A DNA stretch of 64,000 bases, from positions 1 to 64,000 of the forward strand of contig NIVC01002392.1 of NCBI GenBank assembly GCA_002269645.1. The letters run 5' to 3'. This document shows positions 1 through 63,402 of the stretch, piece by piece (within the stretch, counting starts at the first letter, position 1; each line of letters begins with the position of its first letter). The notes under the pieces are model-generated. The model saw only the letters and a list, made by a program, of their open reading frames with translations. It made no database searches and was not told where the DNA came from. The DNA comes from Macrostomum lignano. Taxonomy: Eukaryota. The position numbers and the translations under genes were made by a program.

Positions 1-1044
1 TATGGTTGTCCTGCTGTCTAGCACAGTGATTTGGGCTCTCCGTCTTCCAACTGGAAGCCTTCTATTTGCTCTTAGTAGCGTAGGTATGCTGCCACCAGTT
101 CCTTCAGCGGTCTCGGCCTTGGGTGAGGTGAGCTTCCCGTCGGAACGAAATAACAAGTCAACGAATCTCAGCACAGCGTGCAGATTTGCAGATTAATGAA
201 ACAAGGCGTCCTGCGTCAGGCAGATCCTGCTGCTCAGGGGGTGACTGGGAAGGCATGCTAGCCTCCCTTAGGCTTGGGCGTCTAAGTTAGTCAGGCCAAT
301 GGGTAACTGAACGAAGTCAACAAGAAGAAGAAAAGAAGACAATAAGAAGACTACATTCGACAACTAGGAGATAAGAAGACAAATTCTTGACTGAACCAAG
401 GGTGAGGGGCACGTTATTTATAGGCAGGAAATCCCCGCCTGCGCCAGTGCTGCGCCGGCCTCGTGACGACTCTGGTCTATTTTAGAAATGACGTCACTCT
501 CTGCCTTAGAGAAGCAGAGTCTGCGGGTATAGTGCACAGGGCGATGACTCAGTATCTATTTTTAGAAACATGAGTCACCTATTACCTTAGAGAAGGCAAG
601 GGCCCCGAAGCACGTGATTCCTCCTGTAAACACGGGCCAACGAGTGCAGTAAGCATATTAACTGCACTTTAGGACTTCGAGAAAACAAGACTTGTCAGGT
701 GACTTGCTTACATGACAAGGGAAACAGGCCGCCAGCGTGACCTCAGGACAGGAACGAACGCAGCGCAGGCCACAGCAGAGAAGCTCGTGACTGCAAGCAA
801 GAGCGCAGAGAAGAGGGGGGCGCCAGAGAACAGGCAGCAAAAGGGGAGGGAGGCTGCCCAGCGGCGGGTAAAGTGCAGACAGCAAACCCAGGGCGAGGGC
901 GAGGGCGAAGGAAGCTGCTGACAATAGTGCGACGCCTAACACCAAACTAGCGGATCACTACACATAGACGAAAGCGCATAGCAATGATTCTATCGCGCTC
1001 AAGCGCTAATAACACTAACACTCAAAAATCGTGCAGAATAATAT

Positions 1045-3259: not shown

Positions 3260-3270
3260 CACCCCCACTG
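3260..3270 (-). promoter_or_regulatory. Polypurine tract
   Basis: Minus strand AGTGGGGGTG immediately before the 3' LTR start TGATG. Confidence 0.6.
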
Positions 3271-5727: not shown

Positions 5728-6108
5728 TCAGCGGGGGTCGAATGGGAGACTCACACCTAGCAAGTAAACCTTTTCTGTTCGATAGTCTATGATAGCATGC
5801 GTACTGGCTAGAAAAGCACTACCCAGGAGGGAAACTGCTGCTGAATTGCCAACGACCAGAAAGAGGATTCTCACCTCTTCTAGCCCAATAACTGCTGTGA
5901 GGGTGGCCTGGCCTAGCATCTCTAATTCATTGCCCGTGTAGGACACGGCCTTCACACATGGGGGCTCCAGGGCCTCCACACTCTGTCCGGTAATTTTAGT
6001 AAAGTCTTTGACTGTTAGCAAAGACAGCGCACTGCCCCCATCTACCAGGAGGCGGGTGGGAACATTCTCAATTGGCAACTCTACAACAATATCTCTCCCG
6101 CGTTGTCC
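5728..6108 (-). CDS. pro: Retropepsin aspartic protease, ends with a stop; no downstream RT
   Basis: Motifs LLVDGGSALSLL (D-T/S-G variant), flap SYTGNELEMLG, LLGSAFL; stop at 5728-5730. Confidence 0.85.
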   Translation of the reverse strand, partial: GQRGRDIVVELPIENVPTRLLVDGGSALSLLTVKDFTKITGQSVEALEPPCVKAVSYTGNELEMLGQATLTAVIGLEEVRILFLVVGNSAAVSLLGSAFLASTHAIIDYRTEKVYLLGVSLPFDPR

Positions 6109-6192
6109 TCAGCTGGTCTTGGCTGATAGAAATCGGGTACCTTCTCAAATCTAAACTTCTTGCTGGGCGGACGTGGCAGGTTAAGCTGGGCC

Positions 6193-7674
6193 CTAGAGAG
6201 GGAACGGGGCTGAGTTCGGGCCGGGCCATTCAGCCCTCCCACGGGTTTCCCGAACCCGGGGCTCTTCAGGCGTGGAAGGAGGAGGCATCAGAGCTTGCGC
6301 GCGCAGCTGGGCGAGCCTCTCCTGCCTCTCCCTGGTAGCCTCGTCTAACATATCTCTGCCCCACTCCTCTAAATCTTGCCTATGGCGATCAGGTGGCGCA
6401 CGAAGCTGCAATTGCTGCTGCTGCACACCCGGCGCCGGCGGCGTGGGCGCCTCCTGAATTGCAAGCGGCGGGGGCTGGGGTTGGCGCCAGTTCCTACTGC
6501 TATTAGAGCCGCCCTGCCCCTGCCTCCAGTTCCTGTTGGGAGTGGCGGGGCGAGGGGGCCTCATCTGCTGGGGCAGCTGGGCAACAGACTCTGCTGTCGC
6601 CTTCATAGTTTCATTGAGCTGCACCAGCTGGTTGCGCAGATCCTTTTGCGTTTGCTCTAGCGCGCCCAACCTCTCTTGCATCTCTGATAGGCCGTCACCG
6701 TCCTCCTCCGTCTCGTCAGCTTCCTGGTTCACCATCCTGACCCACTTGCGAGGGGGCCTGGGTGGCTGCTGAGGTTGCAGACGGACTTCGGTGCGGGACT
6801 CAGACCTGGGCGGGCCACTACTGTCCCATTTCCCGGCTAAGTCTGCGGCTTCTAACAGGGCTTGCTGCTGTTCTAACACCTGCTCAATTGTCTGCCAGCG
6901 ACGGCTCAACAGATCTTGTCTGACCTGGCGGGGGAGCTTAGCGTGTTCCAAGTAGGTGTACACGATTTCTTGTTCTCTCTGCTCACCCTGAATCTGAGGA
7001 AACATGGCCGTTATCTGAGATCTTATCATAGCAGCAAAAGCACTATGTGATTGGCCGGGTTTCTGGCTCAGATTCTTCAGCTTATTTCTCTTAGCCAGAT
7101 CAGTGTTGGCCTCGCCCAACTGCTCTCCTAATCTAGATACGAACTGCTCAAAGGGCAATTGCCCGTCCAATCCTAAGGCTAAGTTCTGAAATTCACCTGG
7201 GAGGTGCGAGATGAGCACCTGCTTCCTAGCCTGATCTCCTACAGTTCTCTCCGCGTCCAGCTTGTAGATCATTCTCTCTACCCATTGCACAAAACAGTGT
7301 TCGCCGGGAGAGAACTTTTCTACGTAGATTTTCGGCCTCTGGGCGTCTTGGCCCATGTTTAGCTGGTTAAACGCATTGGCTATAGCGGCAACTAAGTCTC
7401 CTAGCTGCGGGACTGCCTGAGGAGGATTCTGGGCTGCGTCCGGGGGAGCAGCGGCGGCTGCTGCGTCACCCTGATTGGGAGCGGGAGCTGCTACTCCTTC
7501 ATCTGGTTCCTCAACTACTACTGCTTCTGGAGGCTGAGGGACCTGGTTACCAGCGGCTGCGGCCATTGCGGCTGCGGGGGCGGCAACTGCTGGGGTGTCA
7601 GCGGCCGAGGGTGGTTGACCAGGGGCGTCTGCGCACACAGCTTCTACGACCCTATCTCCACGCGCCCGTGACAT
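6193..7674 (-). CDS. gag: Gag-like capsid protein (493 aa), Ty3/Gypsy type
   Basis: Long ORF in the gag position of the element; capsid-like core (KIYVEKFSPG..FVQWVERM...RKQVLISHLPG), coiled-coil and Pro/Gln-rich tail; no CCHC knuckle seen. Confidence 0.8.
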   Translation of the reverse strand: MSRARGDRVVEAVCADAPGQPPSAADTPAVAAPAAAMAAAAGNQVPQPPEAVVVEEPDEGVAAPAPNQGDAAAAAAPPDAAQNPPQAVPQLGDLVAAIANAFNQLNMGQDAQRPKIYVEKFSPGEHCFVQWVERMIYKLDAERTVGDQARKQVLISHLPGEFQNLALGLDGQLPFEQFVSRLGEQLGEANTDLAKRNKLKNLSQKPGQSHSAFAAMIRSQITAMFPQIQGEQREQEIVYTYLEHAKLPRQVRQDLLSRRWQTIEQVLEQQQALLEAADLAGKWDSSGPPRSESRTEVRLQPQQPPRPPRKWVRMVNQEADETEEDGDGLSEMQERLGALEQTQKDLRNQLVQLNETMKATAESVAQLPQQMRPPRPATPNRNWRQGQGGSNSSRNWRQPQPPPLAIQEAPTPPAPGVQQQQLQLRAPPDRHRQDLEEWGRDMLDEATRERQERLAQLRAQALMPPPSTPEEPRVRETRGRAEWPGPNSAPFPL

Positions 7675-10004
7675 GTGAATGCCGGATAGCTGGGGGAGTA
7701 CCCACTACCGGGAAGGAAAAGAAAAGAAAACCGGGGCAACTACAGGTAAAGACCGAAAAGTTGACCCGAAACACACAAACACAGACAAAACTCACACACT
7801 TGCGGCGTCGAAGAAAACAATTTGAAAAACGGGTGGCTCCACATAATTCCATTTAGGCAGTCCTAACGGCTTCACTCGGCAAAGCACACTGACTCAAACT
7901 GCGGCTACCACTACCAGTTGTCTATGGCACATCCTGACAGGGAAAAATTGGCTATTCAGAGAGACTTGACCTTCATTTTGCGGCCATGCTAGGGAACCCA
8001 AATGCCGACCGTAAACGGACTTACGGCACCTGTACAAATTCTCCCCTAGGGTTGCGCGCCGGACCCCATTTCCTTAAGAAAGCTACTACGAAGAAGCGTT
8101 GGCGCCTGGACCCAAAAACCCAAGTGGCGGGAGCAATCCCCATGGAGGTCCTCCCACTTTACTGCCCTTGCACAGCCGGAAAACCGTCGGAGTCCAGTGG
8201 GGCTTCCACCTCAGGACTACCAATCTTGTACACGCAGCTTCACAAAAGGCGGGAATCCAGCTCCCCTACGTCTAGCAGAATCCACAAAAACCAAGACCTC
8301 CCCCTTCTGTTCAGAGCGAAGGCGCGCAGCGGGAGTCCAGACTAAACTGTCCCCGAAGTTTTCAGGTTAGGCGGATTACAAGCCTGAAACTCTCGCCCGC
8401 TTTCCTAGGATAAACAGACCTAAGTGAGTATCTTCCTGAAATGCTTGCCCCTCCGATACTCCACCTTTGCTGCAGCTCGAAATAGCATACTTGGGACCTT
8501 TATCTGATGGCGGAGAAAGTCCTACAGTTGTCAGCCTCTCCACTTTACTGTACTTGAACGCCCGGTTCTACCAGGAGACAGCGGTACCTCCATCTAGGTT
8601 ATTCCAAGTTGCCAGAGACGTCAACCCGTCTTATTGACCTTGCGGGGCACTGGGGTGGCACTCTATGTACCGGGGCTTTACATTAGGGGACTGCATGCAA
8701 CCCTGCGTCTAAGCGCTTAGTGGGCTGCAGTGGCCAGAGGGGAAAAGAGTTGCGCAATAGCGCCTTCCTGGGCCAGGCTGACAAGTCGGGCAGGAGCGCC
8801 GTTCTACCGGGTCGGGCTGATTGGCACACCCACCTCCCCTATCAGACTGACAGCAGGGGGAGGAATTACTAAAGGAGGAGAATGCAGCAGGAAACATTAC
8901 GAGATCACTGGGGGCCACCAGACTTCCAGTACACCATTCCAATACTCACTGAACTCCACTATCAATAGGATACTATGGGATCTACTATTTCCAGCCACTG
9001 CACCAGCCCAAATGCAACCAAAGCAGTTACTACCGGGTCTGCAATACAGTGGGGAGAGTCAGCAGACACGTTGGGATCGAATCCCAGCCATGAAGGCACC
9101 AGGGGTTACCGCAGAATTCAGGTCCGGGCTGATCGCAGGTATTCCATAGGAGGTGACACTTTTTTTAGCCCGAGATTTTTGAGTCACACTGATACCCTAC
9201 AGAGATACAATCACACCGCTATTCCCATTCCTGCGAGACTTTGGTATCCCCCAATGTTTCCAAGGCCATGACTACTGCTTCCCTTACTATGCATATATAG
9301 CGAGTTCCCCATAGCCCTTGATAGCTGTTCATTCTAATGGACAAACAAAACACGCTCCGGTCTCTACGCATTTCTAGGATTAACTGAGCGATCAGGGAGA
9401 GCGACTGTTACACTCCCCGAGTAAAAGAAAGAGGTAGGACAAAGGAAAGAAATGCTTCGCTTCCAGCTTCCCTGTGCTTGCGTGATGAGGCTTCCGTACC
9501 TGGCTGGCTGTCCACCTCAACACTCACACAGTTCTGCTGTAGGCTAGGCGAGAGAAAGAAAGGGAGGGGAAATAAAGCATATTACCATGAAATAGAAAGT
9601 GAGTCCGGAAAATTCACTTTCGCAGTTCTTCACACACTCCGTTACCAGGTAGCTATTCTGATTGTAATCAAATCCGCTCGTCTACCACTTCACACTTTCT
9701 AGCGCTGAAACTGATCGGCTAAATTAATTTTAAATTGAATCAGGGGCTTTTGGCGAATGAATGAATTTGGAAATTTCGAATGAATTGAACGAATTCGCAG
9801 CCCGAAAAATTTGAAAAGTTACATTAATATTTTTGGATTTTGTTGCCTCACGCCATGGGAGAAGAGAATGACGATTGGCGATTTTTACGATTGGTAGATT
9901 TAGACATGGCACTCTTTGCGCTTCGGCCACCATTCTGAGGGATGCCACAGGTGCGCTTGTCACATCTAAACCACCAGTCCGAAACTCAGCGCTGTTTGCA
10001 CCAG

Positions 10005-10022
10005 ATCCCACCGCTGCCACCA
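10005..10022 (-). promoter_or_regulatory. Primer binding site, tRNA-Leu
   Basis: Minus strand TGGTGGCAGCGGTGGGAT, 3 nt from the LTR; complementary to the 3' end of metazoan tRNA-Leu (AAG/TAG type, ...ATCCCACCGCTGCCACCA). Confidence 0.85.
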
Positions 10023-10025
10023 TTT

Positions 10026-12241
10026 TGATGTAACCGCCCTTGTCGCCTGTCCGCTCCGTAGAGAGACGAACGCATGGCTAGAGGGGGCAATGACCGTAGG
10101 CTGCCTATGACCGGGCAATGACCTGACGGACCTCCAGCACCAGACTGTCCCGCCCACATGATTAGTAGCTTTGGTAGCGCTTCGTGACCAGAGGGCCAAG
10201 GACCCACATGGACCCCACCTGTAGCCAAGGTGCAATAGTTGGTCACTCGGTCATGGTATGACCGAGTGGCTGCCACCACTCTATGTGACCTGGCGCACCT
10301 GGATCTTTCTACCAGACCTCTCGAGGCTAGAGCCCCGCCTGGATTGGTTACCAGGGGATTTAGGCTAACAGGGGAGACGCATGCAGCCGAGTACAGGGAC
10401 TCTGCTTGGGGCATGATCGGGAACTCTGGGCTCAATCCTGGAGGATTTCTCAGCAGGGGATCCTTTGTGGCTGTGAGCGAGGCTGACTTGCGACTTTGAT
10501 TACTAAGAGTAGTATGAGGCGAACATGTACTGTCTACAGTTTAGATTGCTCAGGGCGAAGGGACGCGTTAGCATGGGGTTGCAACCTTCCTACTGCCATT
10601 CTGTGCCAAGACTCGCTAATCCCTCTACTGCACGCACACGCGGCCCCGCAGCACGCACTCACAGGCGGGCTTTGCACGGGGAGAGGCCATTAGCTTACCC
10701 AAACTTCCTTATGCTTTGCCACCCCGGGAGAAAGGCTTAGCAAGCCATGAGTGAAATGATGGTGAAAGATTGAATAATGATGAAGTTAGTTAATAGTTAA
10801 TAATTAGGCCCTTAGGCAAATAAGCAGGCAATTAGGCGGCTTCACTATTGAGTAAAATACAGCAAAAGATACGGTATCACAATTGGCTCAGCTCTCTAAT
10901 CAGACAATGGAAAATAGGCAAACCCCGGATAAGCAAAGGCAATTAGAGCACAAATTAGTAGTAGGAACTTACCGGCAGCTGCACAGAGAGAGAGAGAGGC
11001 GGAGTGACCGAGGGCGGCTGTAGGCTGCAGTCAGGCAGACGGTGAAGCGGCGATGCGCTGGAGCGACGAGGCGCTGATGTAGATCAGGCGATGCTGATGA
11101 TGCTGGGCGGTATCAGACCGCTGGCCGATAGGCGAGCTCACTTGGGGAGCTAAGGATAACTTGGCGGTAACAGACCGCGGACCGGCAGGGATTCGTCTTA
11201 TAGACGAATGGGTCAGAACTCAATCTGACAGCAAGTCCAAAGAAGGACGAGGAGAGGAACAGAGATAAACTCAGTTGAGTATTCTCATGCCGAAATCGCT
11301 TCCTTTTATAGACCTCACAGCCGCCTCCTCAAGGTCGTTACCATGGCTCCCTCTCTCTGATTGGCTGCCGGCAGAATGACGTCAGAATGAGTCATGATGA
11401 GAAGCATGAGACCGGCATAGCAACATGAGAAATCGGGAAATTGCGCAATCCGGAGGTGGGGTGGGGGGATAATTGGCGCAGCGGGTGGTCGCGAAAGTGT
11501 TGCGCAAGCAAACATTGAGAACAATAGGGCTGGGGTCGAGAACAAAGGAATTGGAAAACGGGGATAATTGGGGAAAACTGAGAACAATGGAAAAGTAAAC
11601 ATTGGAGAAAAGGTGATAATTAGGTGCGAAAACGAGAACAAAAGAAAGAGAAAATCGGAGAAAATGTGATAATTGGTGGGGGTCGAGAGAACAAAAGAAG
11701 CAAAAACGAGAACAATAGAAGCGGAGGTGGGGTGGGTGTCACATGAGAAATTTGGGAAGGAGAACAATAGCGTGAGAAAAGGTTGCGCAAGAGAGGGGAT
11801 GAGTCATCGATGAGTCACCGAGGGGAGAAGGGGTCACACGACTTGCGTCACCGTTTGGGAGTTTGAGAGGGGATGGGGAGACGGTGAGCACACAAAGTAC
11901 TGTAAGTAGACACAGGGAAAGAGGGGACAGCGCAGGAAAAGAGTGCAGAGGGAGACAAAAAAAAGGAGGAGGTAGAGAAAGTACAGGAAGAATAGGGCGG
12001 GAACAGAAGAGATAGGGTAGAGGGGGAGGTACAGAAAGGGGTAGGGGCTCCGGAAAGGCAGGTGTGGCGGCAGGAGAGACGGGACCAAGGCAGCAGGAGG
12101 GGTGCAGCAGAGCGGGAGTCTCCAGGCCCGGTCGGAGACCTGGCCGAGTCTCGACAGCTCTGTGCAGAGGGTGCACGGGATAGGAGGCACTTTCGAAAAA
12201 GTTCCCATGCCCTATCCCGCGACCAGAGCGTGGTTACATCA
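10026..12241 (-). repeat. 5' LTR (2216 bp) of the gag-pro element
   Basis: Same termini as 1045-3259; followed on minus strand by the PBS. Confidence 0.93.
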
Positions 12242-13380: not shown

Positions 13381-14698
13381 ATGTTCGGCAAATTGTTGAT
13401 GATGGCGACTGCGCTATCAGTGACCTTCACCGCGGCTCAGGCTGCAGGTAAGCAACATTAGATCTTTGTAAAGCGGAATTGAACTCGTCAGGCTCTCTAA
13501 CGAATTGCAGAAACGATCAAAGTCGTGGTTTTAAAAGTCATCGAAGACAAACTAAAATTCCAGAGTTCTCTATCCAGCCGGTGAGCGATCCGATTGCGAT
13601 TTCGGACCAAAAAACTCTGCCGGGTCGCAACGAGAGAGACTGCGCGATGAGGTGCGAGTTGCTGGGCAGCCTGGTGTGCTCAGCCGTCTCATTCGTGCGG
13701 GAATCTGGTCTCTGCCTGCTGTCTGCCGTGCGGAATGCCAGCTTCGGAGCTGCTGGCGGCAGCAGCCAGGTGTTTCGGCGCACTGCCGGCGGGCTGGAGC
13801 CGTGTGAGTTTGAGCTCCTTCGTTGGAGTCCACTAAAGCTCGTGAAACGAGAAACTTCTAACAATTCATGTACTTTAAGTAGACAATGAGAACTAGTTTT
13901 TGTCTATAGCTACACTCACTGGAACTTGCTTAGTCTGCGAAACAGATGTATTTGCGGACGTTTGTCGGGCCTCACAATTTGTTTTCTCGTCTGACCTCAA
14001 GATTCTTACGTTCTTAGTCAGCTTAGGCCAACTTCCGTTCTCAACTAAGTCGTACAAGTAATTTGCGATTTTCAGACGTTGTTGGAGACCGGGTGTTCCA
14101 CTTGATACAGCAGCGAGTCAGAGGCAACCTAAGCTTTGCTCGGAACTGGACTGAGTACGAGAACGGATTTGGGGACGGCTATGACTTTTGGATTGGTGAG
14201 TTCTTCCGTAAAGTAAGATAGTTTCCTTTAAAAGAGTGAAATGATCTTTTCCATTTCTCATTTCCAGGCCTACGGATAATTAACGAGTTGACGGGAAACT
14301 CCCCGAGGCTTCTACGAGTCGAGGCTGTCACCTGGTCGAATGTCCTCTACGTCTGCGAGTACTCGAACTTTACTGTCGGAAATTCCACCACCAACTACAC
14401 CATGAACTACGGCTCCTACCTGACTGCTAGCTCAAACACGAGCATGGACTCGCTCAACTATCACAGGGGAAGGCCCTTCACCACCATCGACCGGGACAAT
14501 GACCAGAACCCAAGCGGTGCCTGCACCGACACCCGCGGCTTCGCTGGCTGGTGGTACGCGAACTGCTGCAACGCGAATCCAAATGGCATGTACTTTCACT
14601 CTGCTGTCACTGACATGTCGGCCATGGTGTGGTTTGGCGCCACATCGTCGAGCTACATTGCTCTGAAGAGCATTCGACTCATGCTCTACTTGGCTTGA
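13381..14698 (+). CDS. Secreted PAN/apple + fibrinogen C-terminal (FReD) protein, copy 1, ~285 aa
   Basis: Exons 13381-13447 (signal peptide MFGKLLMMATALSVTFTAAQAA), 13564-13803 (PAN: DCAMRCELLGSLVCSAVSF..GLCLLS), 14076-14195 (IQQRVRGNLSFARNWTEYENGFG..FWIG), 14268-14698 (FTTIDRDND..GWWYANC..NPNG). GT-AG sites; total 858 nt, in frame. Confidence 0.85.
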
Positions 14699-18751: not shown

Positions 18752-18824
18752 ACTGGTCCGGTGAGGCGTCCAATTGACTAGCATTTAATTCAGACCATTC
18801 AATTCATTCAGCGTGTACGATCCA

Positions 18825-19751
18825 ATGGCGGAAGAAAGCACCAACACACCATCCGTGGTCAGCCAGCAGCCCTCCGGGGTCAGCCAGCAGCCCTCCGGGG
18901 TCAGCCAGCAGCCCACACAAGGAGCGAGTGTCGCGGCGGCACCTGCCGACCCGCCTGCGGTAGCTGCGGTAGCCCTTAAAGTACCGCCATTCTTTCGTGG
19001 CAACCCCGATGCATGGTTTCGGATGTTGGACGCTCAGTTCGACCTTCGAAACATCACCTCCGAGGTAACGCGGTTCAACCACCTGATCTGTCATCTACCG
19101 GAGGATATCGCAGCTGTTTTATTATCTGTGGACACTCCGTCCAACTATACCGCACTGAAGCAAGCCGTACTGAAGATGCTTCAGAAGAGTCAGCAAGAGC
19201 GAATTAACGAGGTCATGAGCGTCTCTGACCTGGGAGGAGACAAACCCAGCATCTTCATACAGCGGCTGCAGGCCAAGATGGCTCAATGCAATATCAAGGA
19301 GAACCCAGACATGGTCAAGGCCACGCTTCTCCGCTGCCTCCCGGCAGAGCTACGCCTTCATCTGTCCGGTTTTCAGGACGAAGATCCAGCACGGCTCGCT
19401 TCCATCGCGGACTCCATGCTGGCTATTCAGCAGTCATCTGGCCACCGCGTCCACGCAGTTCAGAGTACGGCAGGCGACTCAAAGACATCGGGGCCACGGC
19501 AGAAGTCACAGCTGACATCCAGCATGGAACCCTTCTACCCAGGCCAAAAACCAGTAGTCTGCAGAGGACATCTCTACTACGGTGCGCGAACACGCACATG
19601 CAGACGCTGGTGCCAGTTCCCGCGCTCATCCGGCGGCCGCCAGCCTCGCATCCTAGGTCCCAACGAGAGGACTCCGGTGCAATCCCGCTCGAACTCGCCA
19701 GAACGTCCGGCCCAGGGAAACTTCCAGGCACTACCCATGACGCCGCAGTGA
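18825..19751 (+). CDS. gag: Gag of the CsRn1-like element (intact)
   Basis: VALKVPPFFRGNPDAWFRMLDAQF; CHCC knuckle C-x2-H-x9-C-x3-C (CRGHLYYGARTRTCRRWC), typical of CsRn1 clade; -1 slippery site G GGA AAC at 19715-19721. Confidence 0.9.
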   Translation: MAEESTNTPSVVSQQPSGVSQQPSGVSQQPTQGASVAAAPADPPAVAAVALKVPPFFRGNPDAWFRMLDAQFDLRNITSEVTRFNHLICHLPEDIAAVLLSVDTPSNYTALKQAVLKMLQKSQQERINEVMSVSDLGGDKPSIFIQRLQAKMAQCNIKENPDMVKATLLRCLPAELRLHLSGFQDEDPARLASIADSMLAIQQSSGHRVHAVQSTAGDSKTSGPRQKSQLTSSMEPFYPGQKPVVCRGHLYYGARTRTCRRWCQFPRSSGGRQPRILGPNERTPVQSRSNSPERPAQGNFQALPMTPQ

Positions 19752-22700
19752 GCAGTGCCACAGACGAAGCGGCGCGCAAACCTTGTCTCGTCGTCGACCT
19801 CCTCTTTGACGCGCGTCGCCTACCGTTCCTGGTCGATACTGGCGCTGCAGCATCTATCATCCCACCGCAGTACTTATCCCATAACGTCCAGGCAACAGGA
19901 TTCCGATTAACCACCGCCACAGGTGACACCATTCCTGTTGTCGGCGAAATCTCCCTGGAAGTCGCCATTAAAGGACTGCGTCGCGCCTATCGATGGACTT
20001 TCATAGTGGCCTCCGTCGTTCACCCCATCCTCGGCTACGATTTTCTGTCGCATTTCGGTCTCTTGGTCGACTGCAAAGCTCGACAGCTGGTGGATCCGAC
20101 AACTACATTCCATACTCCACCTCTGCCCGTCACTACGACGACCATCGGCAACTTCAGCGTCACTCCGAACTACCCCGACGACTGCGATCCACGCGTCAGG
20201 CGGCTGATCGACTGATTTCAGGATACCTTTACCTACGTGGAGGGAGGTCGGCTGCCGCCGGCGGACGTGATCAAGCACGACACTGTTCATAGGATCGACA
20301 CCGGCGGACATCAGCCAGTGCACGCCAGAGCGCGTCAGCTTCATCCGGAGAAACTTCGCATCGCTCGCGAAGAATTCCAGCAACTCATCGATGCCGGGTA
20401 CATCCGTCCATCCAAGAGTTCATGGGCTTCGCCACTCCACATGGTTCCGAAGAAATCAGACGGCAAACCATCTGGCAAGTGGCGACCGTGTGGCGACTAA
20501 AGAAGGGCTCAACAGCGCTACCAAGCCAGACAGCTACCCGGTCCCACACATCCAGAGTTTCACGCGTTATCTCCATGGCGCGACGGTGTTCAGCAAGCTC
20601 GATCTGGTTCGCGCTTACCATCAGATCCCCATTGCGGAAGAGGACATCGCCAAGACTGCCATCATCACGCCGTTTGGCCTCTTTGAGTGGACTAGGATGC
20701 CATTCGGACTTCGCAACGCCGCGCAGACCTTCCAGCGCTTCATCGACTCCGTCCTGCGCGGCCTGCCTTGCGTCATCGCCTACTTGGATGACCTTCTGGT
20801 CTACTCGAGGTCGGAGGAGGAGCATCTCCAACATCTAGAAGCCGTGTTGACCCGCCTAGCTCATCACGGCTTGAAGGTTCAGCTCAGCAAGTGTGTTTTC
20901 CTTAAGAGCGAAGTCACCTTTCTCGGCCACCACGTTTCCGCCGACGGAATCCGACCTCTCGAAACGAGGGTCGAGACCATCAAAAACTGGCAGGTTCCCC
21001 GCGACGCTGCTGCCCTGCGACGTTTCCTCGGCGTGATCGGTTTCTACCGACGTTTCATCTCCGGTTTCGCATCCACCGCAGCCCCATTGCAGGATCTGCT
21101 CACCGCAGCACTACGGTCTCCTCGATCCTACCAATGGAGCGACATCCACCAAGCCGCATTCGACGACCTCAAGAAGAAGCTCGCCGAGCGTCTCCTGCTG
21201 TACCACCCCGATCCAGACTGCTCGGCCTATCAGCTGGTCACGGATGCCTCTGCTACCAGCGTCGGAGCCGCATTGCATCAGACAGTCGGAGAGCAGACCA
21301 CCTTGATCGGCATGTTCAGCAAGAAGCTCTCCGCCGCCCAGCGAGCCTATTCAGCATTTGATCGAGAGCTACTAGCCGCTTACCTTGCCGTGCTTCACTT
21401 CCGGAACCTGATCGAGGGCAGGCACGTCACGGTCTTCACAGATCACAAGCCTCTCGAGCAGGCATTCCGACACAACTCCCACGGCAACTCCGACCGCAAC
21501 CAGCGCTACATGAGCATCCTGTCTGAGTACGTCACCGACTTTCAATATATCCGTGGCTCGGACAACGTCGTCGCCGATGCACTTTCCAGACTCGACGAAC
21601 CGACCGCCATCGCAGCCATCCAGCAGGGAGCAGCGCCAACTGACCTGTCAGCAATCGCCGATCAGCAAGCCGCCGACAACCTCTCCGAATCAGACCATTG
21701 CCGCTTCTTTCCACTTGGAGACGGCCGTCGCGTACTCTGCGAGACCTCCACGGGTTACCCTCGCCCGGTCGTCCCCATCTCCATGCGTGAATCACTGCTG
21801 AAACATTTTCACGAACTCGGTCACTACGGATTCCGCAGGACCGCCAACCTGATCATCAGCCGCTACTACTGGACCGGCATGCGCACAGAGATCAAGGTCT
21901 TTTGCAGGTCATGCGAGGTTTGTCAGCGCACCAAGATAGACCGCCACACGACGGCCGGCAGCGCTGCCTTCAACCTCCCATCCAACAGGTTCGAGACGGT
22001 ACACATCGACATCGTCGGCCCTCTTCCAGTTCCCGAAAGGAATCATGATACTTAGTGCGGTCTTACACCTCGGTATCTCCTTACTATGATTGACCGCAAC
22101 ACGGGCTGGCTAGAGGCCGCACCCCTCGAGACCGTCACAGCACAAAGCGTGGGAGCAGCCTTCATCGCTTCCTGGATTTCTCGCTTCGGAGTGCCCCTGT
22201 ACGTCATCACTGATAGAGGACCACAGTTCGAGTCCGAGCTCTTCGAGACACTCTCGTCCACCGTGGGTTTTCACCGCCTACGCACCACAGCGTACCACTC
22301 ACAGTGCAACGGGAAGATCGAGCGCGCCCACAGGACTCTGAAGACGATGCTTAAGGCGCGCGGTCCTGCATGGCTCGACAACCTCCCATTGGCACTCCTC
22401 GCCATGCATGTCACTCCGGACGATTCAGGCATCAGCCCATTTACCAGGCTCACCGGCGAGCATCCGATGCTTCCACGGGTCATCGTCAGCGACAAAGATC
22501 CTAACTCCATTCAGATGAGCTTAGACCACCTCTTGGAGCAGCGAACAAGAATGACGTCCACCACACCGCATGTGCCTCAGGAGCTATGGTCGACCGACAA
22601 GGTTTGGGTCCGCGTGGACAGGGTGAGGAAGCCGTTGGAAGCGCCGTACTCCGGACCATACCCAGTCATTCGGCGCACTCCCAAGTTTTTCATCATCGAG

Positions 22701-22979
22701 TTCCGCCCTGGTCACGAAGAAGCCATCTCCATCGACAGGCTCAAACCCTGCAGGTCGACCCCAAGGCCACCGACATAGAGCAGGCCTAGGCAGACCGTAC
22801 AGCCGACTTCAGGGCAGGAGGAAACCTCTACACCAGCAGGACACCAGGACGACACGGAGGCCACACCAACATCCACTACAGCGAATACACCGAAAGTCGA
22901 CGAGGAGGCACCGACGACCCGAACAAGAAGTGGACGACGCGTCCGATTTAAAGCCCAAGATGACTACCTTTACTTCTGA
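19714..22979 (+). pseudogene. pol: pol (protease, RT, RNase H, integrase with GPY/F motif), disrupted
   Basis: FLVDTGA; YLDD; TDAS..ELL..TDHKPL..DALS; HHCC; D(HIDIVGP)-D(ITDRG)-E(KIER); PYSGPY; C-terminal TRSGRRV. In-frame stops at 20213, 20498, 22053, 22776 and a +1 frameshift near 20505. Confidence 0.92.
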
Positions 22980-25013: not shown

Positions 25014-26422
25014 CCGGCATAGCAACATGAGAAATGGGAAAATTGCGCCATCCGGAGGTGGAGTGGGGGATAATTGGCGCAGCGGGAGGTCGTGAAAGTG
25101 TTGCGCAAACAAACATTGAGAACAATGGGGCTGGGGTCGAGAACAAAGGAATTGGAAAACGGGGATAATTGGGGAGAATCGAGAACAATAGAAAAGCAAA
25201 CATTGGAGAAAAGGTGATAATTGGTGGGGGTAAAGAGAACAAAAGAATCAAAAACGAGAACAATAGAAGCGGAGGTGGGGTGGGTGTCGCATGAGAAATT
25301 TAGGGAGGAGAACAATAGCATGAGAAAAGGTTGCGCAAGAGAGGGGGATGAGTCATCGATGAGTCATCGAGGGGGAGAAGGGATCACACGACTTGCGTCA
25401 CCGTTTGGGAGTTTCAGAAGGAATGGGGGGACGGTGAGCACACAAAATACTGTAAGTAGACGCAGAGAAAGGGGGGACAGCGCAGGAAAATAGTGCGAAA
25501 AGGGGCAAAAAGAGGGGAGACAGGAAGAGTACATGAAGAATAGGGGGGAGCGCAGAGGAGATAGGGTAGAGGGGGAGGTGCAAAGAGGGAGGGGGGCTCC
25601 GGAAAGGCAAGTGTGGCGGCAGGGGAGACGGAGCCAAGGCAGCAGGGGGGTGCAGCAGAGCGGGAGTCTTCAGGCCTGGTCGAAGACCTGGCCGAGTCTC
25701 AACAGCTCTGTGCAGGGGGTGCACGGCGATAAGGGGGCACTTTCGAAAAAGTTCCCCTGCCCTATCCCGCGACCAGAGCGTGGTTACATCAATTACAGAG
25801 AATTACTCTGCTACGATCGATTTGGATTAGCGAGGCTAACGACAGTAAGACCAGTGGAAACACCTTACTTATCTTTCTGTCCACAATTTAAAAGGATTTT
25901 AACAAAACTATTAAAAAAAACTTTCTCTTTAAGGAAGTATTTGAGCCAATCATTCAATGCCCCCAAGAATTTACAGAAACACTGTTGTAACTGCATGGCT
26001 TCACATTTCTAATTCTATCAAGAGGGTTTTGGCAAGTGTTGAGACAGAACTCAGCGACATCACCATCTCTAAATTCTCAAAAAATACGAGAATATTGACT
26101 GACACACAGTGTGCTCAAACATTTTAAAGGAGCTAAGGAAGCTCCCTTGTAATAACAGAGTTCTCAGAAGAGGGTTGTATTTCTTCTCAACAAGCGATGT
26201 CTCTGAGATACATAATGGTAAGAATTTCGCTAGTTGGTAAGAGCAAAATGGAAACAACCAAAAACAAGATGGCTGTTTAGTTTAGAGTTTAGTTGTTTGT
26301 GGAGCTTTAAATTGTGACGTTTCTTCGCTTCTTCAAGTTTCTTTTGCTGTCATTTGAGAAAAACTCGTCACCTTAAAACCTGTCACTTCTTCAGCTTCAG
26401 GAGAACCCGCTTGTGTTCCGCT

Positions 26423-27937
26423 ATGGAAAAACGGCTGGTGGTAGCGGCTTTGCTATCTCTGCTTTTGCCTGTGACTTCTGCAGCAGGTAAAATTTCATCT
26501 TTTAGTTGTCTTTTGTATTGTGTAATGCATTGAACTACGAGTACTTTAGTCTGTTTTATTGTTTGTATTCAGACAGAAGCACGAATTTACACGCATGCTA
26601 AACCGATTGGCATGATTTCATAAGCAATTAAGTTTGCTTAAATGCTTCACCAGACATCGAATTCGTTTGTTTTAGACTTTAAAAATGTACGCTTGTGCGA
26701 AAATAAAAAATTCCAGAGTTCTCTATCCAGCCGGTGAGCGAACCGATTGCGACCTCTGGCTACAAAACTCTGCCGGGTCGCAATGAGAGAGAGAGACTGC
26801 GCGATGAAGTGCGAGTTGCTGGGCAGCCTGGTGTGCTCAGCCGTCTCATTCTTGCAGGAATCTGGTCTCTGCCTGCTGTCTGCCGTGCGGAATGCCAGCT
26901 TCGGAGCTGCTGGCGGCAGCGGCCAGGTGTTTCGACGTCGGGATAATTCGCGTGGGGTTGAATTTTATACAGAACGCAAACTTGTTTATGCGACTCTGTC
27001 AATGGTTGAACTATCGAATCAGTGTTTTTCTGTGTCACTTTAAGACTTATCGCTTCTGGGATGAGTACGGTTGGTAACTATACACTCTTGTTTAAGTGGC
27101 TCAAAGTGATGACATTAATAACAAAAAATTACGCTTCTAGGCCTCGTGCGCTATGGGACAATCGACAGTGGCCGCGTGTTCCGAATCATGCAGCACCGAT
27201 CCAAAGGAAATCTGAGCTTTGCCTGGAACTGGAGCGACTATGAGAACGGATTCGGGGACGGCGCCGACTTCTGGATTGGTGAGTCCGGACTGTCACGAGG
27301 TTGATGCACTGAATCGGCATCATCTCACTTTATGATCTGTGTTGACCAGAGATGCAAATGAAGCTCGTGTTTTGTTCGAGGTTTGACTCACGAGTTATTT
27401 TTAAAGAAATCCTTTTAGAAATGCCGCCGAATTTGCGAGTGTAGCCTTCCTTATCCTTTACTTTTCAATGCATTTTAAAGCATTCTTCCCCAAACTGCAA
27501 CTGTAGGTCTAAAAACAATAAACCAGCTGACCGGAAACCCTCCACGGCTGCTTAGAGCTGAGATAATCACGTGGTCGAATGTTCTCTTCGTGTGCGAGTA
27601 CTCCAACTTTACTGTGGGTGACGTCACCACCAACTACACCATGAACTATGGTTCCTACCTGACTGGCAGCTCCAACACAAGCGAAGACTCGCTATCCTAC
27701 CAGAATGGAATGCAGTTCTCCACAATGGACCGGGACAACGATGTTCAAAGCACTTCCTGCTCGAACTCCTACGGCAACGGCGGCTGGTGGTTCAAGGACT
27801 GTTTAAAGACAAATCCTAATGGGATTTACGGCACCTCGGCTGTGAGCGGCCCGGTTTACATGAGTTGGAACGGAGCCACTTCGAATCGTTCAACTGCCTT
27901 AAAGAGCATTCAACTCATGATTGAGTTGAGCGACTGA
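26423..27937 (+). pseudogene. PAN/apple + fibrinogen-domain gene, copy 2 (frameshifted in the PAN exon)
   Basis: Exons 26423-26486 (signal peptide MEKRLVVAALLSLLLPVTSAA), 26717-~26952, 27141-27278, 27507-27937; (GA)6 versus (GA)4 in copy 1 near 26785 shifts the frame. Could be a true lesion or an assembly error. Confidence 0.7.
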
Positions 27938-27977: not shown

Positions 27978-28249
<272 letters not shown>

Positions 28250-28755
28250 ATACTTTGCATCAGAAAAACACAATGATGAACTTCTAGTGGTCCTTGGATG
28301 AAATATTGAATAAATCTTCATTACGCGAGTTCTTAGGTACAGAATGGCACTATTCAAACCTAAGTACGTCATGTTGTTTATTTCGTCAAATCTTTGAAAT
28401 CTCAAAGCACACGGAGTGCCCTTTGACCAGTTAACGAGTGCACCCTAAAGATATTTTTAGCAATGACTGGGCTGGTAACCTTGATTAAGCAAACCAAGTG
28501 TGTAGCCCACAACAGAAACAAAATTGCCTCAGTATATTTAGTGAGCGACGGCTATTCCATGGCATTTTCGCGGAATTGCCGGCAAAAATATTATTGTGTG
28601 TAAATACGTAATAAATAGCCCGATAAGCCAGTTTTTATGGTGAATAATAATTCCAGCTCAGAACTTAATACATATTAAACTGGGAATTACATCAGTTAAG
28701 CACAACCACAGACAGCATGGTAGCCAAACAAAGGACCCAATCGCGAATATGAGCT

Positions 28756-29418
28756 GTGACAGCCGACCCTCACTCTCGGCGATCGGTCGACACCGCAGTC
28801 GACGTCTCTTGCCCACATCCCGACGTGGACATCAGCGGCCAGAACAGCTTGCTTCGCGCCGCTGCCAAAGCTGACTTGAAAGAGTTCGAGCAGCACTATA
28901 GCCAGTGCAACAAAGACTCAGCTGCAGTCAACTACAAAGACTTTAGCAATCGAACTGCTCTGATTCTCGGCAGCATTGCCGGCAGCCTTGAGATCGTATG
29001 CAGACTGACTAAAAACCATCTGGTGAAGATCAATGAGCAGGTACGTGTGAATTCTTGGAAGAAAGTTTAATGACAAAATATGCAGGTATTAACAAACAAT
29101 TCATGTTTTGCATTGCAGGACAGGTCCGGCTTCACTGCCCTCATGTACGCCTCCCAGAGAGGTCACGCAGCCATCGCTGAGTTGCTCCTGAAGAAGAAGG
29201 CCAACTACAGGCTGACGGACAACCGCGGCAACACCGCCATCATTCTGGCCGCCAGACGAAATCAGGTGGCCTGTCTGGAGACGCTGGCTCGCTACATCAA
29301 GGACCCGGCCGACTGGGAGGCGAAGGGAGAGCACGGACTCACTGCGGAAGAGTGGGCCGAAGCCAACGAGAGGCCAGAAGCGGCTGAATTCATACGGAAG
29401 ATGCACAATTCACCTTGA
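28756..29418 (+). CDS. Ankyrin-repeat protein, paralog A (ANK only; start unresolved)
   Basis: Exon ending 29040 (CAG|gtacgt) and exon 29119-29418; motifs GQNSLLRAA, NRTALILGS, GFTALMYAS, GNTAIILAA. The upstream in-frame ATG at 28717 is cut off by TGA at 28750. Confidence 0.65.
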
Positions 29419-31489: not shown

Positions 31490-33312
31490 ATGAACTACGA
31501 ATCAACCAGTGGCCTCAATGGTTTCCATAAAAGTGTCAACCACAGCCATTCGACAGGTAAGATTTGAAAATATTTTTTTGTTCTAGTAAGCCCGTTCGTG
31601 CAGCGGCGCAAAAGTCCTACTCACATATGTTGTTTCTCATCTCAGATCTCTCAAATCCCAAACTGAAGTATTTCTTCTTTCATTTTGCAAATTCTCAGCA
31701 GCTTTGGCTTGAAGGGGAGTACTGAGTTCGAAAAACTTTAGTTCCTAGTGCTGAAGGTCATTCCACGGTAAATCCGTGGAAGAACCGGCCGGAACAGACA
31801 AGTTATTGCGCTGGCAATTCCAGGAATTTCCCACGGAATTGCCGTGGAATTGCCGACTTAGTTTTATTATTTTACTGTACAAGCAAGGGTTTGAGAAATT
31901 TCTCTCTACGCTCGTACGCTCGTATGATGTACTCCATAAAAGTTAATTTTAGCAGCTGAGTAAATATTAAATCAGATACGCAACAACTGATTTCAATTAG
32001 TAGACAACTTTTTAAACCACAATATAGCACGAAGTACTACGATTAATTTTGTTATAAAGGTTAGGCGATAGAGTTCAGGTACAATGTGTCTCCAGATCGA
32101 CTTAAATCTGTAATCGATTCGTATTTTTCGAATTTTTTTCGCAGATGAAAAGTATGGAAAAACCGGCCAATCAGAGACTAAAAGTCTGCACAGGTCCTCA
32201 ACTACAGGGGATGTCCCCGCCAACGACGTGGACATCAGCGGCCAGAACGCGATGCTGCGAGCGGCTGCCAAAGGCAACCCGCAGGAATTCGTGACTATCT
32301 ACCAGCTGAACTCTCGCAGCCAAGAGGCGGTCAATTTTGTGGACTACAGCAAGCGAACTGCGCTCATTCTTGCCAGCGTGGCTGGCTGCGAGGTGATTGC
32401 GAAAACCTTGCTCAGCAACAAGCTGGTGTTGCTCGATTGCCAGGTGAGATAAAAAAATTTGAATGAAACTAATAAAAACAGTTCCCTAATAATCATAACG
32501 CTTACACTTTGTTTTGCATTGCAGGACAGGTCCGGCTTCACTGCCCTCATGTACGCCGCCCAGAGAGGTCACGCAGCCATCGCTGAGTTGCTCCTGAAGA
32601 AGAAGGCCAACTACAGGCTGACGGACAACCGCGGCAACACCGCCATCATTCTGGCCGCCAGACGAAATCAGGTGGCCTGTCTGGAGACGCTGGCTCGCTA
32701 CATCAAAGACCCGGCTGACTGGGAGGCGAAGGGCGAGCATGGACTCACTGCAGAAAAATGGGCCCAAGCCAACGAGAGGCCAGAAGCGGCTGGATTTGTC
32801 CGAAAGACGTAAGTACCGTTTTTGGTTTCTTAGAATTTACAATAAAGTATATCTAAATGAGCGGGAATTTTGATGACTCAGCATCCGGATCGAACTAACC
32901 TACAGGATTACTGAGCTCACTGCCGGCCAGTCAAGCTCTGTGGCGGCCGAATCCAATGACAGAGACGGAGCTGGAGGTCCTTCAAGCGGGAGCGGAAAGG
33001 ATGCCAGCAACCACAGCGGCTCGAACAGGAGAAGTAGCAGAAAGCGCACGCATCAGTCGACAGTGGGCAGTCAGGAGGACAAGACCTCGGGTGGAATGGT
33101 CGGCCGAAAGAGCTGTTTTGCGCCAAGGCTGACAAACGGCGACCGCCGAGTAACCATGGAGACGGGGGTGTTTGGGGTGGTGGCCGTGCAGGATACATGT
33201 CAGGCTAGGGTGTCGGTGGTCGATACTGTTAGTGATAGTCGTGAAAGAGCCGTAGGCGGAGGCGGAGGCGGAAGCGGCGGCGGTGGAGGTAGCGGAGGAG
33301 GAGGAGGCGGAG

Positions 33313-33355
<43 letters not shown>

Positions 33356-34037
33356 TGGCGGAGGCGGAGGCGGCAGAGACGCCAATGAGTTTCAAAACGT
33401 GAGAAACCTTGTCACGCCAGACGACGCCGATGTCTACGAAATTGGTGAAAATCGGCAAGCGTTCCTGGCTGCCTTTAATTTGGTGGATGTCGATGGTCAG
33501 TGTCACTATCGAATTGAGGCCAAGAAGAAAGTTAATAAGAATTTTCGCAAATTCCTTGAAAGCAAAGGCTTTTACGTTGTGGATCTCCGATCAAATGTAT
33601 CATCAGAGTTAAGAGACTATGTGCAAAGCAGAATAGCCGTTGAAACTGAAAGCAGTGCCTGGGCTCTTGCACTACTCGACTTCGGTCGCCTGTCCTTCGA
33701 CGAGAAGCTGGGGCTGCTTGGGCCTGCCCGAACTCGCGAGGGACTGCCAAAACTGCTGCTGAATCAAGGCGTGTCTCCGGATGGGATGGCAGCCTATGGA
33801 GACGTGCGAGTCCACAGGGACACGTTGATGTTGTACAGCCATCAGGGCGGTGACTGCGAGGGTTCGGCCTTCTCGGCGGAGTTTCAAGAGCATTTTAACT
33901 ATCCGCCGCCAGGGCCGGAGTTCACCCAGCACCTGCACAGATTGGTGGTGCCACCTCACGCCAGATGGAGGCAAGACGAGGAGACTCCGGTGTTTGACAA
34001 TTTCCTGACAAAGAGGTTGAAATTTCGTGGAAACTAA
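31490..34037 (+). CDS. Ankyrin-repeat / caspase-like (pseudocaspase) fusion protein, ~593 aa
   Basis: Exons 31490-31556, 32145-32443, 32525-32808 (AC|gtaagt), 32906-34037 (ctaac..cag|g); 1782 nt, in frame. ~5 ANK repeats, Gly-rich linker, then a domain collinear with caspase p20/p10, with catalytic His and Cys replaced. Confidence 0.75.
33255..33375 (+). repeat. (GGC/GGA)n poly-Gly coding run
   Basis: ~40 Gly/Ser codons between the ANK and caspase-like domains. Confidence 0.9.
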
Positions 34038-35326: not shown

Positions 35327-44115
<8,789 letters not shown>

Positions 44116-45201: not shown

Positions 45202-45577
45202 GTGAGGGGCGCCAACTGGGTGTTGTGAGGGGTGCCAACTGGGTGTTGTGAGTGGCGCTAACTGGGTGTTGTGAGTGGCGCTAACTGGGTGTTGTGAGTG
45301 GCGCTAACTGGGTGTTGTGAGTGGCGCCAACTGGGTGTTGTGAGGGGCGCCAACTGGGTGTTGTGAGGGGCGCCAACTGGGTGTTGTGAGGGGCGCCAAC
45401 TGGGTGTTGTGAGTGGCGCCAACTGGGTGTTGTGAGGGGCGCCAACTGGGTGTTGTGCGTGGCGCCAACTGGATGTTGTGAGGGGCGCCAACTGGGTGTT
45501 GTGAGGGGCGCCAACTGGGTGTTGTGAGGGGCACCAACTGGGTGTTGTGAGGAGCGCCAACTGGGTGTTGTGAGTGG
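45202..45577. repeat. 23-bp minisatellite (CCAACTGGGTGTTGTGAGGGGCG), ~16 copies
   Basis: Tandem array. Confidence 0.95.
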
Positions 45578-46912: not shown

Positions 46913-47387
46913 AATCTCATTTTACTGCATGAAATCATGTGGCTACATAGAAAACTACTGGCAAGCGCTGCAAGCCTCTCCAACAAAGGGAGGCCCCTCC
47001 TGCGACCTGAATCAATTCATAAATCCCAGCTGGCCCTGATCGGCCCGCAGGCCTCCAGCCAATCAGGGAGGCCTTTGAAACAGCGGGTCGGGCTGATGAT
47101 TGATAAGTGAATTCAGGCAGTCTCTGCGACCCGATTCTGGACCACCAGCCCGGTTTGCCGCCCCCGCGCCTTTCCGCCTTATTCAAAGCCAAGCAGCCGG
47201 GAGAGTTGAGCACCGCTTCTCGCGCAAGTTACCGCGTGAGTCACTTTTCAGTTGCACTTTCTACTTTTCAGTTGTTTGTCGGGCGTCACCCTGGATACCA
47301 AATTCCTTTTCCGGTATCCCGAACTGCTTTTGTCGTATATTGGGAAATTTCGTTCTCAGAAACAATGCAACGTTTTTTCCACCTAAA

Positions 47388-48150
47388 TAATCCCATAAAA
47401 TCCCACCTCAATTATCCCATAAAATCCCACCTCAAATAGCCCACAGAATCCCACCTCAATTATCCCATAAAATCCCACCTCAAATAGCCCACAGAATCCC
47501 ACCTCAATTATCCTGCAGAATCCCACCTCAATTATCCCATAAAATCCCACCTCAATTATCCCACAGAATCCCACCTCAATTATCCCACAGAATCCCACCT
47601 CAATTATCCTGCAGAATCCCACCTCAATTATCCCATAGAATCCCACCTCAATTATCCTGCAGAATCCCACCTCAATTATCCCATAGAATCCCACCTCAAT
47701 TATCCTGCAGAATCCCACCTCAATTATCCCATAGAATCCCACCTCAATTATCCCACAGAATCCCACCTCAATTATCCCATAGAATCCCACCTCAATTATC
47801 CCACAGAATCCCACCTCAATTATCCCATAAAATCCCACCTCAATTAGCCCACAGAATCCCCCCTCAATTATCCTATAAAATCCCACCTCAATTATCCCAC
47901 AGAATCCCACCTCAATTATCCCATAAAATCCCACCTCAATTATCCCATAGAATCCCACCTCAATTATCCTGCAGAATCCCACCTCAATTATCCCATAGAA
48001 TCCCACCTCAATTATCCTGCAGAATCCCACCTCAATTATCCCATAGAATCCCACCTCAATTGTCCCACAGAATCTCACCTCAGCTATCCCATAGAATCCC
48101 ACTTCAATTATCTCACAGAATCCCACCTCACTTGTCCCACAGAATCCCAA
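47388..48150. repeat. 24-bp minisatellite (AGAATCCCACCTCAATTATCCCAT), ~31 copies
   Basis: Tandem array with variant units. Confidence 0.95.
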
Positions 48151-48654: not shown

Positions 48655-48920
48655 CTCTTACCTGGAATCACTCAGCTCTTACCTGGAATCACTCAGCTCT
48701 TACCTGGAATCACTCAGCTCTTACCTGGAATCACTCAGCTCTTACCTGGAATCACTCAGCTCTTACCTGGAATCACTCAGCTCTTACCTGGAATCACTCA
48801 GCTCTTACCTGGAATCACTCAGCTCTTACCTGGAATCACTCAGCTCTTACCTGGAATCACTCAGCTCTTACCTGGAATCACTCAGCTCTTACTTGGAATC
48901 ACTCAGGTCTTACCTGGAAT
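48655..48920. repeat. 21-bp minisatellite (CTCTTACCTGGAATCACTCAG), ~12 copies
   Basis: Near-perfect tandem array. Confidence 0.95.

Positions 48921-49919: not shown

Positions 49920-63402
<13,483 letters not shown>

Follow-up and report, generated by a model that had tools for sequence, protein, structure and literature searches.

A Macrostomum ankyrin-repeat gene with an orphan C-terminal domain and a nominal resemblance to effector caspases

We analysed a 64,000-nucleotide stretch of DNA from Macrostomum lignano, hereafter the window (assembly GCA_002269645.1, contig NIVC01002392.1, positions 1 to 64,000 of the forward strand), centring on a plus-strand gene at 31490-34037 that joins ankyrin repeats, through a linker and a glycine tract, to a C-terminal domain of 220 amino acids, the tail. 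An earlier note, made by reading the letters of the same DNA, had proposed that the tail is a catalytically dead caspase domain and that the protein is a candidate regulator of cell death or immunity, possibly working with an adjacent gene that encodes ankyrin repeats only. Judged by its splice borders, its reading frame and its relatives, the locus is a real, single four-exon gene for which the proposed model is correct. As a whole the gene is a modest lead and not an established new cell-death regulator.

Gene structure and the Mlig016103 family

Splicing at the predicted borders, all of the GT-AG type, joins the four exons (Table 1), from the ATG at 31490 to the TAA at 34035-34037, into an uninterrupted open reading frame (ORF) of 593 amino acids. 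With a slash marking the exon border, the donors read CAG/GTAAGA for exon 1, CAG/GTGAGA for exon 2 and GAC/GTAAGT for exon 3, and the acceptors lie at 32144/32145 (ttttcgcag/A), 32524/32525 and 32905/32906 (ctacag/G); the frame of exon 4 stays open over 377 continuous codons. Across the whole protein, Pfam detects ankyrin families only, at approximately residues 55-185, with Ank_2 scoring 64.7 bits against a cut-off of 27.3, followed by Ank_4 (57.3), Ank_5 (50.8) and Ank (49.0), these scored matches covering residues ~57-181, and four to five repeats can be counted by eye. The protein is thus a member of the ankyrin families, and the exons, repeats and glycine linker lie where the earlier note had placed them. 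The linker in exon 4 has no Pfam or PADLOC match.

Table 1. Features of the ankyrin-repeat gene and of the adjacent partial duplicate, in window coordinates.
Feature	Position	Strand	Description
Exon 1	31490..31556	+	ATG and 22 codons; disordered N-terminus MNYESTSGLNGFHKSVNHSHST, common to the M. lignano paralog
Exon 2	32145..32443	+	Remaining N-terminus and ankyrin repeats 1-2; Pfam Ank_2/Ank_4/Ank
Exon 3	32525..32808	+	Ankyrin repeats 3-5; Pfam Ank families, E 1e-13 to 1e-17; 95% identity with the neighbour's exon at 29104-29401
Exon 4, first part (linker)	32906..33254	+	In frame with exon 3; Ser/Gly/Arg-rich, with basic patch NRRSSRKRTH and short hydrophobic stretch METGVFGVVAVQ
G5 run	33164..33168	+	G4 in L001 (about 11915) and L002, from pairwise and three-way DNA alignments
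Gly/Ser tract	33255..33374	+	40 codons (38 Gly, 2 Ser), (GGC/GGA)n repeat; equal length in L001
C-terminal domain (tail)	33375..34034	+	220 amino acids, orphan; the proposed 'dead caspase'
Conserved core of the tail	33633..33884	+	Residues 87-170: IAVETESSAWALALLDFG...GLPKLLLNQ...DTLMLYS...GSAF
Stop codon TAA	34035..34037	+	Same position in L001 and L002; large indels relative to L001 right after it
ANK-only neighbour	28771..29418	+	Exons 2-3 partially duplicated in tandem; two exon-like blocks, at ~28771-29040 and 29119-29418

The closest protein match is BOX15_Mlig016103g2 of M. lignano, with 87% identity over 331 amino acids, and Mlig016103g1 falls in the same cluster. This match speaks against an insect origin, which the richness in repeats had at first suggested. 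The loci of these paralogs, on NIVC01000056.1 (L001) and NIVC01003806.1 (L002), are 99% identical to one another and show 91-94% DNA identity to the window across approximately 4 kb; all three loci are collinear, with a Notch-like gene downstream in each, and all three splice junctions of the window gene are used in the annotated paralogs (PAA49719.1, PAA92327.1). By exon structure, synteny and identity, then, the window gene is to be classed as a member of the lineage-restricted Mlig016103 family, on which our full-text literature search found no paper under the name 'Mlig016103'. The three subgenomes of M. lignano are only ~2% apart (PMC10733133), and because the identity here is 91-94%, the window would represent either an older paralogous locus or a sister species.

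The paralogs also bear on the continuity of the transcript. Their models, which were built with RNA-seq guidance (PMC5730564), use the junction 32808/32906 as FIRKT/ITELTAG, which makes read-through from exon 3 to a TAA at 32810 unlikely; together with the continuous frame of exon 4, this splicing supports the earlier placement of ankyrin repeats, glycine tract and C-terminal domain in one transcript unit.

Where the window gene parts from its relatives is a run of guanines in the linker. The loss of one base (G5 to G4) shifts the frame in both L001 and L002 and leads to a stop, ..VVKEP*, ahead of the glycine tract; both annotated products are accordingly 331 amino acids long and lack the tract and the 220-residue tail, the translation of 260 C-terminal residues being settled by this one base. 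Beyond it, the tail frame in L001 and L002 is open to the same TAA, with indels of only +3 and -9. The truncation is probably real, since Illumina reads of both DNA and RNA were used in polishing the Mlig_3_7 assembly (PMC5730564). Truncation, true or due to assembly error, may thus affect the publicly available proteins of the family in M. lignano, and the narrower value of the present locus lies here: models shortened by a 1-bp difference have, at a related locus, a counterpart with an intact 220-residue orphan domain.

The orphan tail and its comparison with caspases

The tail is genuine coding sequence: its frame stayed open in none of 20000 nucleotide shuffles, 5-13 stops interrupt each of the five remaining frames, and its GC content by codon position is 0.61/0.38/0.57. 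No match to it was found in Pfam, NCBIfam or PADLOC, and searches of PDB sequences, with phmmer and with a two-sequence profile, gave only noise at E>1. It likewise had no relative among 5.8 billion clustered proteins in a word-indexed search, among 1.84 billion representatives in an exhaustive phmmer search, or in a scan of JGI metagenomes, and no second copy of the domain lies within the window. As far as sequence comparison reaches, the tail is an orphan domain with no detectable relative in the databases searched. A single phmmer match, to a bacterial repeat protein over 45 residues of unstructured lead-in, was judged spurious. Two single-sequence AlphaFold models of the tail have predicted local distance difference test (pLDDT) scores of 43 and 47, and a Foldseek search of the PDB with both of these low-confidence models returned nothing at E<=0.001, the 50 best matches including no caspase.

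Selection was gauged from the ratio of non-synonymous to synonymous substitution rates (dN/dS) in a pairwise comparison of the window copy with L001. Purifying selection is evident on the ankyrin part (dN/dS 0.30; binomial P=0.0006) and on the linker (0.18; P=0.02). The whole tail, with 11 synonymous and 31 non-synonymous differences, has a dN/dS of 0.83 that is indistinguishable from neutral (P=0.37); within it, the core of residues 87-170 stands at 0.22, with 5 substitutions in 252 nucleotides against 16 expected (Poisson P=4e-4), and the flanks at about 1.0.

For the comparison with caspases we used an alignment and hidden Markov model (HMM) of 15 sequences, namely six caspase-3 orthologues together with caspase-1, -2, -6, -7, -8 and -9, Drice, CED-3 and cFLIP. 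The motif strings quoted in the earlier note are all present verbatim in the sequence, and hhalign in global mode, blind to that proposal, yields the same seven-block collinear pairing, which begins at the first strand and extends as far as the C-terminal LTKxLxF. With the tail named first, the pairs are VYEI..AFLAAFN/Y.M..CIIINN, FLESKGFYV/FRNLKYEV (the F..LGF.V block), ALALLDFG/CVLLSHG (within which LLDFG faces LLSHG), GLPKLLLNQ/GKPKLFIIQ, DTLMLYS/DFLYAYS, GSAF/GSWF and TPVFDNFLTKRLKF/IPCI.SMLTKELYF; 44 of the 218 residues aligned with caspase-3 are identical. The likeness to the effector caspases (caspase-3, -6 and -7 and Drosophila Drice; MEROPS C14A, PF00656) is thus weak and collinear over the whole tail.

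The hhalign score of 15.3, as against 3.0 +/- 2.2 for shuffled sequences, was reached by two of 1200 full shuffles, by none of 638 twelve-residue window shuffles and by one of 112 natural decoy segments, and it rose to 23.5, a value attained by none of 500 column shuffles, when the L001 copy was added. With a profile of effector caspases the score was 18.0 (0/120 shuffles as good), whereas with a profile of caspase-8, -9, -1 and -2, CED-3 and cFLIP it fell to 2.6 (59/120 as good) and the signal was lost. Pairwise local matches to caspase-3, -6 and -7 are confined to the p10-like half. By our own reading, the low-confidence AlphaFold models place helices or strands at nine of the 11 expected positions of caspase elements.

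The remaining tests gave no such signal. Searched with hmmscan, neither the whole protein nor the 220-residue tail matched Peptidase_C14 (PF00656) at E<=10; our own caspase HMM, run in HMMER with --max, scored the tail at -1.2 bits, a value equalled by at least 97 of 2000 shuffles; and human caspase-3, compared by BLASTP and tblastn with the tail, the window and L001, met only noise. The HH probability of the alignment between tail and caspases is only 3-8%, and sites differing between the window copy and L001 are not significantly depleted at caspase-identical positions (4 observed against 6.2 expected, P=0.21). The earlier note had named the lack of a caspase-fold hit as refuting, and on that count the caspase assignment fails with Pfam, with the PDB sequence search and with Foldseek on the two low-confidence AlphaFold models; only the targeted profile-profile test is weakly positive. 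The resemblance would thus exceed chance only nominally, with a nominal p of ~0.002-0.01 that falls short of database-level significance and that carries little weight because the caspase family was chosen after the sequence had been read. A resemblance read by eye has in this case proved reproducible by a profile aligner and is yet well short of proof.

In the best alignment the catalytic His121 of caspase-3 (SHG) is paired with Phe103 (LLDFG), and QACRG with Q131 and then either a gap or GVSP, which leaves Cys163 without a counterpart (a gap or Val133); Arg64 and Gln161 correspond to Arg46 and Gln131, and the loop of Arg207 (SWR) is deleted, in an alignment that is itself not statistically secure. 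The tail differs further from effector caspases in being ~50 residues shorter and in having no conserved Asp cleavage site, and its caspase fold is putative. Were the tail derived from a caspase, it would certainly be catalytically dead; an active caspase is ruled out, provided that the alignment holds, because the His, the Cys and the SWR loop are missing. The catalytic death claimed earlier stands to this extent, conditional on a caspase assignment that the profile and structure searches leave unconfirmed. Descent of the tail, in very degenerate form, from an effector-type caspase is accordingly a tentative proposition, and the sole concrete candidate for its ancestry.

Readings of the tail

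We lean, with middling confidence, towards an ankyrin adaptor that carries a fast-evolving, non-catalytic and dispensable tail. Such a protein would be non-enzymatic: its constrained ankyrin module (dN/dS 0.30) would bind a partner protein, and the flexible linker would tether a small alpha/beta tail module without plausible catalytic residues. If active at all, the tail module might serve as an accessory surface for interaction or self-association, perhaps through its conserved core, its central 84 residues being conserved and its outer parts evolving at the neutral rate. Its dispensability is suggested by the 1-bp deletion through which the two reference copies of M. lignano lose everything from the glycine tract onwards. 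The combination of frameshifted copies and a near-neutral tail argues against an indispensable regulator, and no result of the analysis links the gene with cell death or immunity, the two roles for which it had been put forward.

Several observations weigh against even this modest proposal. The role of adaptor would be drawn only from the general behaviour of ankyrin repeats, and the alpha/beta character of the tail from two AlphaFold models of low confidence. The substitution rate of the tail (6.5%) is close to that of the downstream non-coding DNA (6.1%), and the contrast between non-synonymous and synonymous changes in the core is non-significant on its own counts (Fisher P=0.10); a tail that changes at the non-coding rate, with so few differences in its core, may lack a function altogether. 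The G4 state, on which its dispensability turns, could also be an artefact of assembly or polishing in a multi-copy region.

A more ambitious reading holds that Macrostomum carries an ankyrin-tethered pseudocaspase, in which the tail is a genuine, extremely diverged derivative of an effector-type caspase that has kept the fold and lost the His, the Cys and the SWR loop. It would act in the manner of cFLIP, by pairing with or capping an active caspase, and the ankyrin repeats would give it a localisation or a second partner. We consider this unlikely. In its favour are the independent recovery of the collinear blocks by hhalign, with R64 matched to R46, Q161 to Q131 and GSWF to GSAF; a score above 1198 of 1200 shuffles, all 638 window shuffles and 111 of 112 natural decoys; the rise from 15.3 to 23.5 with the paralog, equalled by 0/500 shuffles; the concentration of the pairwise matches to caspase-3, -6 and -7 in the p10-like half; and, with the caution that low-confidence models impose, the apparent placement of nine of 11 secondary-structure elements as expected. 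Against these stand the absence of Peptidase_C14 at E<=10, an HMMER score of -1.2 bits that at least 5% of shuffles equal, and the failure of PDB sequence and profile searches and of Foldseek to return a caspase, alongside an HH probability of 3-8%. The signal is moreover gone against initiator and inflammatory caspases, CED-3 and cFLIP (2.6; 59/120), variable sites do not spare caspase-identical positions (P=0.21), the family was picked post hoc at a nominal p of 0.002-0.01, and the domain, whose dN/dS is 0.83, is frameshifted off in M. lignano.

Set beside known proteins, the pseudocaspase proposal finds only partial parallels. If the homology is real, the tail would be comparable to cFLIP-L (CFLAR) and other pseudocaspases, in that a caspase-like domain lacking the catalytic Cys could act through binding only. 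However, cFLIP has tandem DED prodomains, whereas the N-terminal module here consists of ankyrin repeats; Pfam sees only ankyrin families in the N-terminal half and no death-fold prodomain, whether DED or CARD. Further, cFLIP is readily recognised as a caspase homologue, whereas no significant profile match exists for the tail and its signal is abolished when cFLIP and the initiator caspases serve as the profile. A precedent of another kind is Caiap, an ANK-CARD adaptor in a caspase pathway, whose ankyrin domain binds the active caspase-1-like Caspa (PMC5662874) and thereby indicates that ankyrin repeats can act as a caspase-binding module; Caiap has no sequence relationship to the window protein beyond generic ankyrin repeats. 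An animal protein fusing ankyrin repeats to a caspase did not surface in our full-text literature search.

Were the pseudocaspase proposal true, the tail would be present in the window copy and absent from the frameshifted copies, that is, it would come and go between closely related loci or species, a pattern compatible with rapid evolution of a protein that modulates caspase activity in an animal used as a model of regeneration. An ankyrin-recruited pseudocaspase would then join the short list of non-catalytic caspase relatives, and Macrostomum, which permits both RNA interference and transgenesis, would allow direct tests of cell-death control in regeneration.

Alternatively, the tail may be a functionless relic, which would have encoded protein in the ancestor that the copies share and would since have drifted in every one of them. 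The working gene would then consist of ankyrin repeats and linker, as in M. lignano, with the frame here intact by chance. Such a relic would agree with a dN/dS of 0.83 that is not distinct from 1 (binomial P=0.37), with a substitution rate equal to that of flanking non-coding DNA, with the truncation of both M. lignano copies and with the want of any relative in the protein databases searched. The frame stays open in 21% of neutral simulations with 42 substitutions, and since 43% of the indels in the non-coding DNA alongside likewise have lengths divisible by three, the two in-frame indels of the tail are uninformative. We nonetheless regard a relic as quite improbable, given that 5 substitutions, against an expected 16, fall in the central 84 codons (P=4e-4; dN/dS 0.22), that the stop codon is co-located in all three copies, with alignment quality collapsing just after it, and that the ancestral ORF of >290 codons is far beyond chance. 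Finally, that the C-terminal ORF comes from a transcript of its own, for which in-frame ATGs in exon 4 at about 33096 and 33148 could be invoked, or that transcripts run on from exon 3 into the TAA at 32810, the fusion being an annotation artefact, is highly improbable in view of the RNA-seq-guided M. lignano models that join exons 3 and 4 at the same nucleotides, the canonical donor GAC/GTAAGT and its acceptor, and the 377-codon continuous frame.

Neighbouring features of the window

The partner suggested by the earlier note, the ANK-only neighbour, finds no indication of that role in the window. It is 66% identical overall (tblastn) to the ankyrin region of the adjacent gene, and nothing in it corresponds to exon 4. 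Its first visible exon lacks an in-frame ATG downstream of a TGA at about 28750, so that a further exon upstream would be required. The L001 and L002 loci lack the neighbour, a further difference between them and the window. In its second exon the neighbour matches exon 3 of L001 more closely (98% identity) than exon 3 of the adjacent gene (95%), which hints at gene conversion or a complex history of duplication. Directly upstream of the duplicate lies a perfect (ACT)92 microsatellite (27978-28254), a repeat that is also found in L001.

Downstream, the Notch-like receptor gene, on the minus strand at ~39183-43832, comprises ANK, LNR and EGF-like exons and is syntenic in L001 and L002. A derivation of the ankyrin module from this gene was considered and rejected, as the two show no similarity at E<1e-3. 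Within a long ORF of the Notch-like gene a 17-bp unit is repeated 36 times in tandem (43271-43876), with a predicted repetitive peptide, and the same region holds one 39/81-bp array (40369-40637) and one of (CTGT)137 (41695-42238). Between the ankyrin and Notch-like genes, three consecutive plus-strand ORFs of 322, 189 and 129 amino acids (36474-38533), with a Cys-rich N-terminus and no Pfam match, may be exons of one gene, either unassigned or transposon-derived.

Upstream of the ankyrin genes lie two fibrinogen-related genes, with exons for the fibrinogen C-terminal globular domain (PF00147, E about 1e-20) at 14288-14698 and 27590-27937 on the plus strand. This part of the window also contains a young long terminal repeat (LTR) retrotransposon (1041-12241), in which two 2.2-kb LTRs (1041-3259 and 10022-12241) with 99.7% identity enclose a minus-strand gag-like ORF (6193-7674); a diverged partial LTR occupies 25151-25793. 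By motif content only, a second retroelement is recognisable on the plus strand at 18813-22778, with consecutive gag-like, protease/reverse transcriptase (554-amino-acid ORF) and integrase-like ORFs.

Toward the far end of the window, exons of a G-protein-coupled receptor of the rhodopsin family (Pfam 7tm_1) occur on the plus strand at 49920-50369 and 60949-61434, separated by ~10 kb of minisatellite-rich sequence with arrays at 50657-51997, 52796-52969, 55304-55767 and 58315-59187. More long minisatellites lie at 45202-45574, 47379-48149, 48655-48920 and 62282-63141, with periods of 21-24 bp and 13-36 copies, and produce spurious long ORFs on both strands.

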